Of a stretch of 45,951 bases of DNA, positions 5,223 through 45,667 are shown in pieces. Below the pieces are notes generated by a model, which was not told the origin of the DNA, made no database searches, and saw only the letters and a list, made by a program, of their open reading frames with translations. The DNA is from Octopus bimaculoides (taxonomy: Eukaryota): positions 21,562,960-21,608,910 of the forward strand of contig NC_068996.1 of assembly GCF_001194135.2 (NCBI RefSeq), written 5' to 3'. The translations under genes were made by a program, and so were the position numbers. How positions within the stretch are numbered: the first letter of the stretch is position 1; each line of letters begins with the position of its first letter.

Positions 5223-7292
5223 CCTTCATATGGTCAGAGATTTAGGGACATCCTAATTGAGAAATTTGATAAAAGGGAGGAAGACTAGTGACATATAGGG
5301 CAACTGGGAATTCCTGTGGGATATCTTGCTGAGTACCACAAATCAAATCTGCGGGTGGTGCAAAGTCCCTTCCTGACCTAATGTGACATGGTGGTGGAAT
5401 GATGCTGTAGACAGGGCTATTAGAGCAAAGAAACAGGCCTGGAAGGCCTGGAAGAGTGGGGGCAGCAGGGAACTGTATCAGATAGCTAGAAGGGAAGCTA
5501 GGAGACAGGTATATGTAACCAAGGTAGAAGCAGAAAAGAAGTTTTGCCTATGTTCAGTAACGTGAGAACCAAAGAACTGAAGTATCTCGGATTGCAAGAG
5601 AGTGTGTGAGAAAAAATTGTGATGTCAAAGAAGAAAAATGTGTCCACATGGATGATGGATCACTTGCTTTTAATGGGTCTGCAAAGAAAGAGGCTTGGAG
5701 ATGCCATTATGAAAGACTATTGAATGTAGAGAATGAATGGGAGGAGGAGAGTCGGTCAAATGTTGACCCAATTGAGGGACCAGCAGTCCAAATTGACAGT
5801 ACCTTGGTAGATAAAGCACTTACAGATATGAAAACAGGGAAAGCCCCTGGACCATTAGGAATCACCATTGAGATGCTTAAAATATCTGGCANNNNNNNNN
5901 NNNNNNNNNNNNNNNNNNNNNNNNNNNNNNNNNNNNNNNNNNNNNNNNNNNNNNNNNNNNNNNNNNNNNNCAGCAGGGAACTGTATCAGATAGCTAGAAG
6001 GGAAGCTAGGAGACAGGTATATGTAACCAAGGTAGAAGCAGAAAAGAAGTTTTGCCTATGTTCAGTAACGTGAGAACCAAAGAACTGAAGTATCTCGGAT
6101 TGCAAGAGAGTGTGTGAGAAAAAATTGTGATGTCAAAGAAGAAAAATGTGTCCACATGGATGATGGATCACTTGCTTTTAATGGGTCTGCAAAGAAAGAG
6201 GCTTGGAGATGCCATTATGAAAGACTATTGAATGTAGAGAATGAATGGGAGGAGGAGAGTCGGTCAAATGTTGACCCAATTGAGGGACCAGCAGTCCAAA
6301 TTGACAGTACCTTGGTAGATAAAGCACTTACAGATATGAAAACAGGGAAAGCCCCTGGACCATTAGGAATCACCATTGAGATGCTTAAAATATCTGGCAG
6401 TGTGGGTTATGGTCTAGTAACATGTATTGTAAATCAAGAGTTTCATGAAGGAGCCATACCCAACAACTGGTGTAGCAGCACCATAGTCAACTGCTACAAA
6501 AGTAAAGGCGATGCTTTAGAGAGAAATAATTACAGAGGTATTAAATTGTTGGATCAGGTGATGAAAGTTATGGAGAGGGTCATAGCCCAGCTAATTAGGG
6601 AGAGGGTCAGTCTATGAGATGCAGTTAGGTTTTGTGCAAGGGAGAAACACCACTGATACTATATTTCTGCAGGATAAATACATAGCCAAAGATAAACCTC
6701 TGTACTTGGCTTTTGTTGACTTGGAGAAAGCCCTTGACAGGGTCCCCCAATCCCTTATCTGGTGGTCAATGTGGAAACTAGGGAGAGACAAGTATTTGGT
6801 GAGAGCTGTGCAAGCCATATACAGGGATGCTACCTGTAAGGTGAGGGTGGGTAATGAGTACAGTGAAGAATTCAGAGCAGAAGTAGGAGTACATCAAGGA
6901 TCAGTCCTCAGCTTCCTCTAGTTCATCATAGTCCTCCAGGTAATGACAGAGGAATTTAAGACAAGCTGTCCCTGGGAGCTCCTCTATGCTGATGACCTTG
7001 TTTTTATATCTGAATCACTACCAGAATTAGAGAAGATGTTTCAGGTATGGAAGTAAGGTCCAGAATGAAAGGGTCTTAGAGTTAACCTAACAAAAACCAA
7101 AGTTTTAGTAAGTAGGAAGCCAGACAAATCACAAATCCCTTCAGGTAGATGGCTCTGCTTGATCTGTAGAAAAGCATAGGGAGAAACTCCATAAGATGTA
7201 CTCAGTGTAAGTCTTGGATACATAAGAGGTGCAGCAATATCAGAGGAAAGTTAATGGGGAAAATAGCTTGTGTATGTGGAAAGTTCACAGCT
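5223..7292 (+). pseudogene. RTE LINE ORF2 body (linker and RT domain), disrupted, with a duplicated block around the 79-N gap
   Basis: Contains the motifs MKTGKAPGPLGITIEMLK, NYRGIKLL, LYLAFVDLEKALDRVP, GVHQGSVLS and LLYADDLV, with stops and frameshifts. Confidence 0.93.
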
Positions 7293-9088
7293 ACCAGCAG
7301 AGGTAGGAGCTCTCTGAACTTTGCCCAGCCTAATCTTATTCTCATAGCTATGCTCTCAGAGCATCCAGCTCCACTACTAACTTGATCACCTAGATGACAG
7401 AAGCTATCTACTATCTCTAGCTTACCCCACTGGCAGGTGATGAGGTCTATTTTCTGCACATTTTCAGTGTTTATTGTACCTGTGCACCTTTCACATACAA
7501 AAATTAGTTTCCCTGTTAACCTTCCTCTGATGTTACTGCACTTTTTATGTGTCCAAAGCTTGAGTGTATCTTATGGAGTTTCTACCTACACCTTTTCTAC
7601 AGATCAAGCAGGGCCATCTACCTGAAGAGATTTGTGATTTGTCTGCCTTCCCGCTTACTATGACTCTAGTTTTACTAGGTTAACTTTGAGGCCTTTTGAT
7701 TCTAGACTTTGCTTCCATACCTGGAATTACTTCTCTAGTTTAGATAGTGATTCAGCTATAAGAGCAAGGTCATAAGTATAGAGGAGTTACCAGGGGCAGC
7801 CTGTCGTGAATTCCTTTATTATTGCCTGGAGGACTATGATGAACAAGAGGGGGATGAGCACCAATCCTTGGTGAACTCATACTTGTACTCTGAATTCTTC
7901 ACTGTACTCATTGCCCACCCTCACCTTACTGGTAGCATCCCTGTACAAGGCTTGTACAGCTCTCACCAAATACTTGTCTCTCCCTAGTTTCCACATTAAC
8001 CACCAGATAAGGGATTAGGGTCCCTGTCAAACGCTTTCTGCAACTCAACAAAAGCCAAGTACAGAGGTTTATGTTTGGCTATGTATTTCTCCTGCAGTTG
8101 CCTTACCAGAAATATAGCATCAGTGGTGCTTCTACATGGCACAAAACCAAACTGCATCTCATCTAGACTCTCTCCCTAATTAGTTGGGCTATGACTCTCT
8201 CTGTAACTTTCATCATCTGATCCAACAATTTGATACCTTTATAATTATTTCAGTCTAAAGCGTCACCTTTATCTTTGCAGCAGTTGATTATGGTGCTGCT
8301 ACATCAGTTATTGGGTATGACTCCTTCATGAACCACCTGATTTACAATAACCCACACTGTCAGACCATAACCCACAGCGCCAGATATTTTAAGCATCTCA
8401 ATGGTGATTCCTAATGGTCCAGGGGCTTTCCCTGTTTTCATATCTGTAAGTGCTTTATCTACCAAGGTACTGTCAATTTGGACTGCTGGTCCCTCAATTG
8501 GGTCAACATTTGACCGACTCTCCTCCTCCCATTCATTCTCTACATTCAATAGTCTTTCATAATGGCATCTCCAAGCCTCTTTCTTTGCAGACCCATTAAA
8601 AGCAAGTGATCCATCATCCATGTGGACACATTTTTCTTCTTTGACATCACAATTTTTTCTCACACACTCTCTTGCAATCCGAGATACTTCAGTTCTTTGG
8701 TTCTCACGTTACTGAACATAGGCAAAACTTCTTTTCTGCTTCTACCTTGGTTACATATACCTGTCTCCTAGCTTCCCTTCTAGCTATCTGATACAGTTCC
8801 CTGCTACCCCCACTCTTCCAGGCCTTCCAAACCTGTTTCTTTGCTCTAATGGCCCAGTCTACAGTATTGTACCACCACCGCGTTACCCTAGGTCTGGAAG
8901 GGACTTTGCACGAACTACAGATTTGGTCTGTGGCACTCAGCAAGCTATCTTGCAGGAATTCCCAGTCGCCCTCTATGTTACAAGTTTGTCGCTCCTCCTC
9001 CCTTTTATCAAATTTCTCAATTAGGATGCTTTTAAATCTCTGACCATATGAAGGGTCCTTAAGCTTCTAAATCCTTCTTTTCCAGATT
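7293..9088 (-). pseudogene. Second RTE LINE ORF2 body, inverted relative to 5223-7292
   Basis: Reverse-complement homologue with the same motifs (KAPGPLGITIEMLK; VDSFCHLGDQVSSG...RIRLGWAKFRELLPLLV). Roughly 80% similar by eye outside one identical block. Confidence 0.93.
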
Positions 9089-9189: not shown

Positions 9190-9452
9190 TATAGCAGTCT
9201 CTATATTCTCTATCATTATGATTATTACTAATATACACTCCAGATAATACTATCAACCAGTAAAGCGAGCACAGAATTAGCCAACTACAACCTTAGGAAT
9301 GAGAACCCAGGTTCAAAATTTCCCCAAGACACCTGATGAAGGCTGGAGTGTGTATCAGCTGAAACATTGTGTTAACAACAAACAAGATGAGGACAAATAT
9401 CTGTCAAATGTAAATAATGTACATAATTCTTCATCTCTTAAATATAGAACTG
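9190..9452 (+). mobile_element. Probable solo pseudo-LTR / 3' fragment of a Penelope-like element
   Basis: Carries the hammerhead motif followed by an inverted repeat (AGATGAGGA...TCTTCATCT). Hammerheads in terminal repeats are an established feature of Penelope-like elements. Boundaries are approximate. Confidence 0.55.
9328..9373 (+). ncRNA. Degenerate minimal hammerhead motif in a Penelope-like terminal-repeat fragment
   Basis: GACAC [CTGATGA] A GGCTG-loop-CAGCT [GAAA] CA TT GTGTT. Stem I is GACAC/GTGTT. Two changes consistent with CpG decay (CAGCC>CAGCT and AACGTT>AACATT) weaken stems II and III. Confidence 0.7.
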
Positions 9453-42938: not shown

Positions 42939-43003
42939 TCCGGTCTTTCCAATATCGTAACTAACTTGCAAAGGAGTCGAAACAGGCGGCCGTTTTCAAC
43001 TTC
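42939..43003 (-). CDS. PAN3: PAN3 internal coding exon (65 nt, phase 0 to 2), start of the C-terminal knob domain
   Basis: Minus strand reads ttttctttccag|GAAGTT...AGACCGGA|gtaag and encodes EVENGRLFRLLCKLVTILERP(E). This matches the metazoan PAN3 motif EVQNGRLFRLLAKLGTINERPE (recalled from human PAN3). Confidence 0.97.
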
Positions 43004-44869
43004 CTGGAAAGAAAATGACAAGGAATTGATGTTAGACAAGACTGCAGATAGGTTTATAAAAACACACACAAGCTCATATTTTTGTGTTACTATTGATGAT
43101 GTCACAAAAAAAAAAAAAGACACACACAATACATGCTGCAAAAGGGTTGGTGTAAGGAAGAGTATGCAACCATAGAAACCTTACCAAATGATACATTGGA
43201 GCACTATGTAGTCCTTAGATTCTGTCAGATCCTGTGAAACCACCCAACCTATGTCAACATGAATGATGGATGTTAAAAGATGATGATATCATCATTCAAC
43301 ATCAACATTACCATCATTTAATGTCTGTTTTCCATGCTGGCATGGGTTGGATGGTGTGGCAGGATCCAGTGGATCCAAGGACAGCACTATGATCCAGTTC
43401 TATAATTGAATGCTCTTCTTAATGCCAACCACTTTATAGAATGTACAGGGTGCTTTTTTTGTACCACCAGCAAGATAGAAAAAGAACAGAGAAAAAGATT
43501 TCACAACTCAGTGAGGGAGGGGGCTTTATGCCAGGTGCTCAGGGGCTTTACGCCAGGTGTTCAGGGGCTAAAGTGTGATAGAGGGACAAGAATAAGTATC
43601 TTGTTAAAGAGAAGACACATGGCTACTCCACATATATGAGTGGGAATAGCTGGGAAGATAAAGATGGTAATGATGGGAGTGGGGGAAAAACAAATCCTCA
43701 AGGTACAAGGTGAGTATATGAGAAGACACAGACAGTGGATTTGGGGAGGGGAAGAAGAGAGTGAGAAGTTGTGTATAAGTGTGAGAAGAGAACAACAGAT
43801 GACTGGAAATGAAGGTAGAGGTAAATATAGCAAGTGATGAACAGAGGTGGCGTGGTTGATGAGAAATACCAATATGGAGTAGATGTAAGGTGAGAGAAAT
43901 AGAAGCAAGGGANNNNNNNNNNNNNNNNNNNNNNNNNNNNNNNNNNNNNNNNNNNNNNNNNNNNNNNNNNNNNNNNNNNNNNNNNNNNNNNNNNNNNNNN
44001 NNNNNNNNNNNNGAAAGCGGACGTTAAACGATGATGATATATATATATATATATATGAAATATACTAGCTGAATATCCCATCGTTGCCAGGGAATTTTCA
44101 CAATAGGATGACTTTATTTCATTTTTTTTTTTCATTCCATGTCAGATCATGTCTTCTCTGATGGATAGGCCTCTTGATCAGAACTGATATCTGCATTATT
44201 TGGGGCAATATATAATGTTTTTGTTTTTCCATGTGGTGCATAGATGTAAAGATCTTTCTTAGTTCACTGCTGATGCTTTGTGAGGGTCTTTTCAACACTG
44301 TCGCTCTAATGAAATTCTTTACACACATGCATACACACACATACACACAGACACGCACACACATACACACACCCAAGAGAAAGAGCGAGAGAGTATGAAA
44401 GTTTCCAATGAGAAAAGTCACAGACAAAAAGAGAGATCTTTTCTGTTGTTAAAGACTTTGAAATTTTAAAATTAAGTGAAAATTTTCAAATTTGGTATAT
44501 GGATGTCTATCACAAAATGAAATTAAAAACGTCACAACTATGAAGTTCTAAACAAAATGGAAACAATTACACATCATATCAACAGAGAGGGTGAGCAACA
44601 TGCGTGAGAGATATACATATACATAGAGAGAGTGAAATATACATGTACAGAGGGGAAAGTATAAGATGGAGAGAACTGGGAGACAGATAGAGAATGGGAG
44701 ATTTGTCAATCTAAAAGTTGAGATATTTTTCGTAGTAAATCATATTTTTAGATTAATTGTAACTGAAAACCTTGTCACTGGAACACAGATTTCAAAAATC
44801 AAATCCATTTTCTTTAAGGACACACTGTGAACCTTTTGTGATATATCCACATACACACGCTCATTTATG

Positions 44870-44916
44870 TAATAGAAGATATATGTATATGTGTGTGTAT
44901 GTAAATATATATAGTC

Positions 44917-44947
<31 letters not shown>

Positions 44948-45120
44948 CACATATACATATATATATATATATACATATATACATATATATACATATATAT
45001 ATATATACATATATACATACATATACATATATATATACATATACATATACATATATATAAACATATATATATATATATAAACATATATATATATATATAT
45101 ATATGTATACATATATATAT
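44870..45120. repeat. (TA)n/(TACA)n/(TATACA)n compound microsatellite
   Basis: Direct reading. Confidence 0.98.
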
Positions 45121-45146
45121 GAAGAAAAGCAACAAAAATTCAATAG

Positions 45147-45245
45147 ATTATAGCAGTACGTACGTTTCGTACAAACTTCATTTATTCATGAAGTGAGAAC
45201 ACTACATAAAATGTATAATGAAAATGTACTCCTCAGCTGCATAAT
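45147..45245 (-). ncRNA. Type I minimal hammerhead ribozyme motif with intact core
   Basis: Minus strand reads AUUAU-GCAG [CUGAGGA] GUACA...(internal hairpins)...UGUAC [GAAA] CGUACG [UA] CUGC-U-AUAAU. Stem I is 9 bp with one bulge, stem II is 5 bp closed by G10.1-C11.1, stem III is the palindrome ACGUACGU, and the cleavage triplet is GUA. Confidence 0.85.
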
Positions 45246-45339
45246 GGAAGTTCATTTTAGAAAGGTCATTTTGTAGATGTTTGCAGAAACAAGAGTAGGA
45301 GAAGAAGAAAATATCATCTTGACTGGGCTGTTAATCAAC

Positions 45340-45630
45340 AGTCTAGACTGTTGATTTGACTGAGGACTGGCAAACCAGAAGGCTGCACCAGGCTCCAATC
45401 TGATCTGGCAGAGTTTCTACAGCTGGATGCCCTTCCTAACGCCAACCACTCCGAGAGTGTAGTGGGTGCCAGTCCAGCGGCACTGGTAACGATCTCGCTC
45501 AAATGGTTTTTGAACATGCCATCAGAACAAGTGCTAGAAGGCAACACTGGTAACGATTACACTCTAATGGTGGTATTTACGGGCCACTAGCACGGAAGCC
45601 AGGGAGCTGCTCTGGCAATGTACACGCTCA
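45340..45630 (-). mobile_element. RTE 3' UTR fragment
   Basis: gatttgactgaggactgg...ccaggctccaatctgat...gatgcccttcctaacgccaaccactcc. Confidence 0.8.
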
Positions 45631-45667
45631 ACTGTGCTGTTAGTGCTCCACTGGCGCGGGTACATAA

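Follow-up and report, generated by a model that had tools for sequence, protein, structure and literature searches.

An intron of the PAN3 gene of Octopus bimaculoides contains a complete type-I hammerhead motif of 99 nt. With a probability of about 0.62, we take it to be a genuine hammerhead on a ~175-nt non-coding piece of a mobile element from a retrozyme- or Penelope-associated lineage, which landed in a (TA)n region of the intron in the lineage leading to O. bimaculoides. Most likely the motif is a passenger of such an element and not a regulator of PAN3. The sequences show the motif and its significance, the gene, intron and strand that hold it, its lack in two sister species and its transposon-rich surroundings; the mobile origin, the boundaries of the unit, the polarity of the insertion and a low activity are what we infer. 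The window, that is the whole stretch of 45,951 nt that was analysed, is identical (100%) to part of O. bimaculoides chromosome CM046616.1, and positions refer to it unless a locus is named.

Anatomy of the motif

Read from 45245 down to 45147 on the minus strand, the sequence runs AUUAUGCAG, CUGAGGA, GUACA, a stretch of 51 nt, UGUAC, GAAA, CGUACGU, A, CUGC, U and AUAAU. Its elements and the evidence for each are the following.

45147-45245, minus strand: complete type-I hammerhead motif (sequence read, descriptor scan, full-length RF00163 alignment)
45237-45245, minus strand: 5' strand of helix I, AUUAUGCAG, pairing with 45156-45147 (minimum free energy and centroid folds, descriptor scan)
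45230-45236, minus strand: core C3-U4-G5-A6-G7-G8-A9, CUGAGGA (sequence, descriptor scan, Rfam alignment)
45225-45229, minus strand: 5' strand of helix II, GUACA, with G10.1 at 45229 (descriptor scan, constrained fold)
45174-45224, minus strand: 51-nt insert capping helix II (folding, Rfam alignment)
45169-45173, minus strand: 3' strand of helix II, UGUAC, with C11.1 at 45169 (descriptor scan, constrained fold)
45166-45168, minus strand: core G12-A13-A14 (sequence, Rfam alignment)
45158-45165, minus strand: 8-nt palindrome of helix III, ACGUACGU, running from A15.1 to U16.1 (sequence, folding, Rfam)
45157, minus strand: A17, with predicted cleavage 3' of this base, between 45157 and 45156 (position within the motif)
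45147-45156, minus strand: 3' strand of helix I, CUGC-U-AUAAU, with the bulged U at 45152 (folds, descriptor scan)

All conserved hammerhead positions are present: C3, U4, G5, A6, N7, G8 and A9, followed by G12, A13 and A14, the pair A15.1-U16.1, and H17. The topology is that of type I with an open helix I, which comprises 9 bp divided by the bulged U into blocks of four and five, while helix II has 5 bp and starts with the pair G10.1-C11.1. Helix III depends on copy number. In a monomer it is reduced to two pairs (A-U and C-G) closed by a GUAC loop, and two copies together can form a duplex of 8 bp. The 51-nt insert can fold into two hairpins or, alternatively, into a single long imperfect arm; the inner hairpins UACAU/AUGUA and ACUUCAU/AUGAAGU are both there. 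The tetranucleotide GUAC occurs three times in the motif.

The original prediction had described a complete core with G10.1-C11.1, a bulged stem I of 9 bp, a palindromic stem III and a large loop 2 with extra hairpins, and this description is confirmed. It had also pointed to two surviving CpGs in stem III. These are indeed found, and a third one at C11.1-G12 has to be added, so that the motif holds three CpGs within 10 nt.

Position within the PAN3 gene

The host gene was identified by protein searches. A PAN3 C-terminal peptide retrieved a partial PAN3 of Argonauta hians, and a longer query the proteins of O. bimaculoides, O. vulgaris and O. sinensis. The corresponding loci are called L001 (A. 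hians), L002 (O. bimaculoides), L003 (O. vulgaris) and L004 (O. sinensis) here. The last three coding exons of PAN3 lie on the minus strand of the window at 43003-42939, 38867-38729 and 34677-34531, the first of them being the one that follows the motif:

42939-43003, minus strand: PAN3 exon (EVENGRLFRLLCKLVTILERPE), its acceptor 2154 nt downstream of the predicted cleavage site

The intron ahead of this third-last coding exon is 6.08 kb long and is bounded by exons at L002 71206-71334 and 77416-77484. Within it the motif occupies L002 75186-75265 on the sense strand, 3.85 kb from the donor exon. Two assembly gaps interrupt the intron, one of 1.66 kb about 700 bp upstream of the motif (L002 72812-74470) and one of 100 N (76410-76509). 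The assignment to the sense strand of a PAN3 intron, originally made on the assumption that the upstream exons lie beyond the window, is thus confirmed by the identification of the gene and its upstream exon, and so is the proposed distance of about 2.15 kb between the cut at 45157/45156 and the acceptor at 43003.

Descent or chance

Is the motif a hammerhead by descent, or could it have been assembled by chance from CUGANGA, GAAA and complementary stretches in a sequence that is rich in AT and in GUAC? We consider chance assembly very improbable. A descriptor consisting of CUGANGA, GAAA, H17 and minimum helix lengths matched the window only once on both strands, namely at the motif. Across 600 simulated windows (third-order Markov model) it produced 19 weak matches, none of which reached the observed total of 18 helix base pairs, and the reversed sequences of all octopod loci gave no match at all.

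Chance nevertheless has several points on its side. About 3% of the simulated 46-kb windows contain a weak match, and a genome of 2.3-2.7 Gb would yield thousands of random matches to a relaxed descriptor. The three GUACs make the pairing of helices II and III cheap, and the z-score of the overall fold is merely -1.7. Moreover, the Rfam score stays under the gathering threshold. At that threshold no hammerhead is reported in the whole window, and none at E<=10 in a segment of 401 nt. When positions 45140-45260 are searched alone (121 nt), the model RF00163 Hammerhead_1 aligns over its full length to 45150-45242 on the minus strand, with 18.8 bits and E=0.023; the gathering threshold lies at 34 bits. 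In this alignment a 53-nt insert stands at loop 2, which is only 6 nt long in the model, and we attribute the low score to this insert.

What speaks against chance are features that match the family consensus although the descriptor did not ask for them: the 8-nt palindromic helix III (ACGcgCGU in the consensus), the G10.1-C11.1 pair and the place of the bulge in helix I. Further, the same build occurs twice more in about 250 kb of octopod sequence, against an expectation of one per 10 Mb. Given the simulations, the reversed controls, the full-length Rfam alignment and these consensus features, we conclude from sequence comparison that the motif is a hammerhead by descent.

Related builds in other octopods

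A second scan asked for CUGANGA and GAAA followed by a palindrome of 6-10 nt and H17, with modest requirements for helices I and II. It revealed two further hammerheads, whose sequences are unrelated to the O. bimaculoides motif. One is shared by O. vulgaris (L003, C3 at 65718) and O. sinensis (L004, 66137) and lies in the same PAN3 intron, likewise in sense. Its position is not orthologous; it falls into a segment that matches the 100-N gap of O. bimaculoides. The other one, from Argonauta, is found on the minus strand of L001 (C3 at 28166), 4.5 kb beyond the PAN3 stop codon.

All three share a common build of CUGANGA, a helix II domain of 53-62 nt, GAAA, an 8-nt palindromic helix III, A17 and helix I. 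Three independent matches in about 250 kb compare with one per 10 Mb in a simulated run of 10 Mb, roughly 100 times the chance level, and this recurrence points to a class of mobile elements. Of the three, the O. bimaculoides motif is preserved best, since its G-C at pair 10.1-11.1 is replaced by A-U in O. vulgaris and by G-U in Argonauta. A scan allowing one mismatch in the core recovered no more members of the class in the loci, and Rfam detected neither the O. vulgaris nor the Argonauta hammerhead. The minimal-type hammerheads that also occur in the octopod loci belong to a different, SINE-like family.

The presence of two hammerheads in one intron calls for an explanation. The O. vulgaris copy sits in the loop between two inverted arms of about 380 bp with (TA)n on both sides, and at this (TA)n site O. 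bimaculoides carries a SINE. In both lineages the (TA)n tracts of the intron have gathered SINEs, a Tc1 element and a foldback element, and so the simplest explanation for the two hammerheads is that the microsatellites are landing sites common to several element types. One could also imagine an undescribed class of octopod elements (~175-285 nt) whose recurrence in and near PAN3 reflects the repeated capture of self-cleaving RNAs that modulate the deadenylase transcript, a scenario we regard as far-fetched.

The surrounding block and the candidate unit

The motif is embedded in a block of about 4.3 kb (L002 71347-75670) that is rich in microsatellites and transposons. The block begins with (TG)n(TA)n, a Tc1-like DNA transposon with an ORF of 269 aa, and (TA)n with a gap. 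A SINE with a (GAT)n tail follows, then (TA)n and a second, 3'-truncated SINE that ends in a perfect 24-nt palindrome. The hammerhead segment comes next, succeeded by a (TA/TATG)n tract of 260 bp and about 110 bp of unique sequence. The immediate neighbourhood in the window is made up as follows.

45353-45640, minus strand: abundant octopus SINE, 3'-truncated, directly 5' of the unit, 5.1% from its family consensus
45333-45356, unstranded: perfect 24-nt palindrome AATCAACAGTCT|AGACTGTTGATT at the end of the truncated SINE
45304-45311, minus strand: upstream TTTTCTTC, candidate target-site duplication, 1 nt past the (GAT)n tail of the SINE
45129-45303, minus strand: putative inserted unit of 175 nt with the hammerhead, flanked by the direct repeat TTTTCTTC
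45121-45128, minus strand: downstream TTTTCTTC, abutting the start of the microsatellite
44862-45120, unstranded: (TA)n/(TATG)n microsatellite, directly 3' of the unit (sequence)

About one direct repeat of 8 nt like TTTTCTTC is expected by chance in the space searched, and for this reason the boundaries of the unit are treated as putative. The unit has a GC content of 0.31. Its fold is not unusually stable (z = -1.35), nor is that of a putative unit of 266 nt (z = -0.87), and the folding of both lends no support to a compact, retrozyme-like circle. As to related sequences, no second copy of the 175-nt unit exists in the ~330 kb of octopod DNA formed by window and loci, so that no repeat family could be recovered for it there, an observation that counts against a mobile unit. 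Similarly, no tandem partner occurs in the window or the loci, although the 1.66-kb assembly gap ~700 bp upstream may hide one. An exact-pattern scan of metagenome and viral contigs, collections essentially free of cephalopod DNA, had 0 matches. A search with the Tc1 transposase for further Octopus loci led to one protein and one locus of 21 kb, which contains no hammerhead.

Two other candidates were considered and dismissed. The first was that the adjacent SINE regularly includes the hammerhead at its 3' end; since none of the other SINE matches (34-59 per 50-bp bin) extends into the hammerhead segment, we do not regard it as part of the SINE. The second, what looked like an endonuclease remnant ahead of the '9328-type' motif, proved to belong to a tRNA-like SINE head.

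The original prediction had offered a recent Penelope-like insertion as one of two origins. Of this the mobile-element origin is favoured here, whereas the assignment to Penelope-like elements (PLEs) is no more than plausible: no RT or GIY-YIG ORF, pLTR or second copy was found, and the architecture is canonical, as is usual in non-LTR retrozymes and in Schistosoma and newt repeats, and not of the minimal Penelope type. In its explicit form this account takes the motif as the 3' end, or pseudo-LTR, of a heavily 5'-truncated PLE that was inserted into (TA)n by its GIY-YIG endonuclease and brought along its own processing ribozyme. PLEs do always carry hammerheads in pLTRs near their 3' end, frequently lack their 5' part and insert preferentially into (TA)n microsatellites (PMC8557442, PMC4209133). 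The end of the motif lies 28 nt from a (TA)n tract, an adjacency of low weight, as other elements share it, and the O. vulgaris hammerhead between its ~380-bp inverted arms resembles the inverted, truncated partner copies of PLEs. These likenesses have to be held against the absence of any adjacent RT or GIY-YIG remnant: no such ORF and no pLTR were found at the end of the window or in L002 71335-77415, N gaps aside, and tblastn with approximate PLE RT and EN queries gave matches at chance level only. The canonical build with its 8-nt helix III palindrome and no extra base after A9 also argues against a PLE, as does the separate, SINE-like family into which the minimal-type hammerheads of the octopod loci fall. 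We therefore consider a truncated PLE unlikely and prefer the short non-coding piece of a retrozyme- or Penelope-associated lineage.

Age of the block and comparison with sister species

The first 12 nt of the intron are common to O. bimaculoides, O. vulgaris and O. sinensis. Then follows the 4.3-kb block without a counterpart in the other two species, and the alignment restarts at L002 75683, which corresponds to L003 64363. About 180 bp of non-repetitive sequence at the edges of the block are likewise missing in O. vulgaris. The 3' half of the motif (<=3 mismatches) is absent across the whole PAN3 locus of both O. vulgaris and O. sinensis, and a BLAST search of these loci with a 223-bp segment returned nothing. 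The difference may represent an insertion in O. bimaculoides or a deletion in the vulgaris/sinensis lineage, and either would fit the alignment: the orthologous intron of the outgroup A. hians (~2.1 kb) cannot be aligned and holds no hammerhead.

Indirect indications of age come from the SINEs. The two copies in the block differ from their consensus by 1.7% and 5.1%, and the alignable intron is 83-90% identical between species. At three further places in the gene, SINE copies 1.7-5.1% away from the consensus have clean empty sites in O. vulgaris. Because these similarly diverged copies lack counterparts, the two block SINEs probably inserted after the split. Furthermore, the three CpGs of the motif persist in a region with a CpG o/e of 0.33. 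SINE divergence, empty sites and surviving CpGs would thus, if indirectly, favour a young block.

These comparisons bear on the second origin proposed in the original prediction, a retained cis-acting ribozyme that cuts the PAN3 intron and tunes the splicing or abundance of a deadenylase subunit. The proposal is not supported. At the orthologous position O. vulgaris and O. sinensis have nothing that corresponds to the motif or to the 4.3-kb block, and absence in sister species is one of the two observations that the original prediction had named as speaking against domestication; a conserved, domesticated ribozyme thus finds no support. Some features would suit such a function, namely the intact core, G10.1-C11.1 and three CpGs, the sense orientation in the intron, and the second sense hammerhead that O. 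vulgaris and O. sinensis have in this intron, a coincidence of about 4% by intron length and about 2% when strand is included. The two intron hammerheads are unrelated, however. They have no common sequence, and pairing between their helices III, ACGUACGU in O. bimaculoides and AUGGCCAU in O. vulgaris and O. sinensis, is not possible. An intron full of (TA)n that collects SINEs, Tc1 and foldback elements explains the recurrence, and the predicted fraction of active fold discussed below is very small. With only 19 substitutions in 3.5 kb, O. vulgaris and O. sinensis are too similar for a test of constraint on the hammerhead that they share. Taken together, a regulatory role in PAN3 appears highly unlikely, and a passenger on a mobile element remains the preferred reading.

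Predicted folding and activity

Would the motif cleave? The unit would be transcribed within the PAN3 pre-mRNA. Once the three-helix junction is formed, G12 and G8 would catalyse the attack of the A17 2'-OH on the next phosphate, and the resulting cut between 45157 and 45156 would leave a 2',3'-cyclic phosphate and a 5'-OH. A single copy has a helix III of only 2 bp with a tetraloop, formed within an 8-nt palindrome. To cleave efficiently, the motif would therefore probably have to be stabilised by tertiary contacts of the helix II arm with the bulge in helix I, or else pair with a second copy into a double hammerhead.

According to nearest-neighbour prediction the catalytic fold is not the favoured structure of the monomer. 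The constrained hammerhead reaches -19.2 kcal/mol, compared with -22.8 kcal/mol for the minimum free energy structure, and the hammerhead-compatible fraction of the ensemble is about 2e-4 in a model that ignores tertiary contacts. The minimum free energy structure holds a competing hairpin, GUACG-AAA-CGUAC, whose loop consists of G12-A14. For dimers the estimates are -48.8 kcal/mol for the double hammerhead and -45.6 for two free monomers, but other dimers should be still more stable, at -53.3.

Experience with related ribozymes points in two directions. Single-copy hammerheads of coral and mussel retrozymes with a 2-bp helix III cleave in vitro at 0.1-0.8 per min (PMC7229834), and in PLE and newt/axolotl hammerheads with helices of this kind it is mainly the dimer that cleaves (PMC4209133, PMC6765202, PMC7229834). 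Since there is no second copy nearby and the competing hairpin sequesters G12-A14, we expect from these models that the motif cleaves weakly or not at all in cis and plays no part in the expression of PAN3.

Implications

Genome-encoded hammerheads of type I that are linked to retroelements are well known in animals, molluscs included, and a new solo hammerhead in an octopus intron changes little in this picture. In the literature searched, none has been found for cephalopods. The octopod examples are of interest for annotation: their unusually long helix II arm makes Rfam miss them, and hence standard annotation under-counts such motifs. In this intron, moreover, (TA)n tracts serve as landing pads common to several element types, and recurrence in one intron should be read as function only with caution. 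If cleavage were shown in vivo, the motif would offer a natural test of the effect that a self-cutting intron has on splicing.

Comparison with known systems

Among hammerheads in introns, the conserved amniote examples are likewise of type I and located on the sense strand in an intron of a protein-coding gene. They are orthologous across amniotes, in contrast to the octopus motif, which is missing in the two closest sequenced Octopus species.

The closest known relative in architecture is the canonical metazoan type I of RF00163, as found in the Schistosoma Sm-alpha and newt satellite 2 elements. It has the same core, topology and G10.1-C11.1 pair, and its 8-nt palindromic helix III and helix I bulge have their equivalents in the octopus palindrome and in a bulge at the same position. 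Three differences set the octopus motif apart: helix II is capped by 51 nt, where the canonical loop has 4-6 nt; H17 is A, where the consensus has C; and it stands alone as a dispersed copy, outside any satellite or SINE array.

PLE hammerheads typically have a short palindromic helix III and cleave in a dimer-dependent manner (PMC4209133; PMC6765202). Those of metazoans are minimal, with a helix I of 4-5 bp, a helix II of 6-8 bp, an unpaired base after A9 and a helix III that is almost absent (PMC4209133). The octopus motif resembles them in its type-I topology and short palindromic helix III (PMC4209133; Lunse et al. 2017, as cited in PMC6765202) and in its (TA)n neighbour, as well as in the expectation that it would act as a dimer, and inverted truncated copies are known for PLEs. 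It departs from the minimal type by a helix I of 9 bp, the direct succession of A9 and G10.1, and a full 8-nt palindrome in helix III.

The non-LTR retrozymes of invertebrates typically combine a type-I hammerhead with a helix III of 2 bp and a palindromic tetraloop, in AT-rich non-coding units of 150-450 nt, of which the mussel has ~5000 copies (PMC7229834). The octopus unit of ~175 nt, AT-rich and non-coding with a weak palindromic helix III, is similar in these respects. It differs in being single and not arranged in head-to-tail tandem, with no family members recovered, and in lacking an unusual degree of structure, unlike the compactly folded retrozyme circles. The motif would work like the hammerheads of retrozymes and PLEs, but membership in either family is no more than a candidate assignment: tandem repeats, PLE ORFs and pLTRs were looked for in the loci and not found. 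Non-LTR retrozymes are reported to derive from the pLTRs of PLEs and to be depleted from vertebrate introns (bioRxiv 10.64898/2026.07.22.740005), whereas the octopus unit is intronic and in sense. The depletion suggests selection against such insertions and thereby speaks against a function in PAN3: a neutral or slightly harmful passenger fits better than a recruited regulator.

Hammerheads of the same build in other species

The type-I hammerhead of the O. bimaculoides PAN3 intron (window 45147-45245, minus strand) has counterparts of the same build, that is, CUGANGA, a 53-62-nt helix II arm, GAAA, an 8-nt palindromic helix III, A17 and helix I, at the PAN3 loci of three further species:

L003 (O. 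vulgaris PAN3 locus) 65712-65795, plus strand: same-build hammerhead, sense, in the same PAN3 intron
L004 (O. sinensis PAN3 locus), C3 at 66137: same-build hammerhead at the site matching that of O. vulgaris
L001 (Argonauta hians PAN3 locus) about 28070-28180, minus strand: same-build hammerhead

The O. vulgaris and O. sinensis copies share the order UUUCCC CUGACGA, a 53-nt helix II arm, GAAA, UGGCCAU, A and GGGAA. In O. vulgaris, the hammerhead lies in the loop separating two inverted arms of about 380 bp each (L003 65179-65556 and 65906-66236), a structure with (TA)n on either side, and the 266-nt unit that carries it is bracketed by the 9-nt repeat CTTTTAACT. The Argonauta hammerhead is found 4.5 kb beyond the PAN3 stop and on the opposite strand. 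CUGAUGA and A17 are present, helix II forms a 62-nt hairpin, the palindrome reads ACAAUUGU, and helix I has 4 bp plus 9 bp with a bulged A in between; helices I and II are retained in its MFE fold (z = -3.5).

Insertion sites and a possible rearrangement

One (TA)n microsatellite is shared between two of these species. In O. bimaculoides (L002 76386-76409) it holds an antisense SINE, after which the assembly has a gap; in O. vulgaris (L003 65160-66360) it holds a 1.1-kb foldback element including the hammerhead. This site has been struck independently in the two lineages. Another (TA)n tract of the O. bimaculoides intron, beyond the window, received a DNA transposon:

L002 (O. bimaculoides PAN3 locus) 71510-72770: Tc1-like DNA transposon

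Terminal inverted repeats (GGTTGGACAAAATA...) mark this element, and its 269-aa ORF matches Pfam HTH_Tnp_Tc3_2, the nearest database relatives being proteins 70-75% identical.

Next to the O. bimaculoides hammerhead, a perfect 24-nt palindrome, AATCAACAGTCT|AGACTGTTGATT (window 45333-45356), sits exactly where the adjoining SINE loses its usual 3' end. Behind it comes a short segment similar to the tail of that SINE (CAGTCAA...GATGAT). The palindrome may have been left by a template switch or a rearrangement.

Possible coding remnants

Window 10629-10970, plus strand: ORF with a GIY-YIG-like pattern, recognized by eye, inside inverted repeats (10067-11255)

The pattern reads IIYEAEV...YIGLCEGEFKNRY...FRH with a Cys-rich stretch ahead; Pfam returned no match for this ORF. 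L002 24411, L003 19727 and L004 20167 all preserve a remnant like this one (IYCATCSQCKVYYIGEIR). Window 5284-8985 contains a reverse-transcriptase-like ORF as long inverted duplicates, of which one arm pair (444 nt) is 100% complementary, together with a 300-nt direct repeat broken by N runs. The duplicates represent either two inverted LINE copies of very young age or an artefact of the assembly.

A separate family of minimal hammerheads

Window 9333-9364, plus strand: minimal hammerhead (9328 motif)
C3 at L002 49656 (minus strand), L003 46042 and L004 48531: minimal hammerhead copies

In the 9328 motif, CUGAUGA and a single unpaired A are followed by a helix II of 6 bp and GAAA, and AACAC pairs with GUGUU as helix I. 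The motif belongs to a minimal-hammerhead family separate from that of the larger intronic motif. One orthologous PAN3-intron site has kept the minimal hammerhead in all three Octopus species. At 90-160 nt upstream of the L002 and L003 copies, a tRNA-like head (GGCGTAGTGG...GGTTCGATTCC) occurs together with an (AAT)n tract; ARAGORN called no tRNA at this place. The copies look like a tRNA-derived SINE with a hammerhead aboard, and in this they resemble Sm-alpha of Schistosoma, likewise a tRNA-derived SINE bearing a hammerhead.
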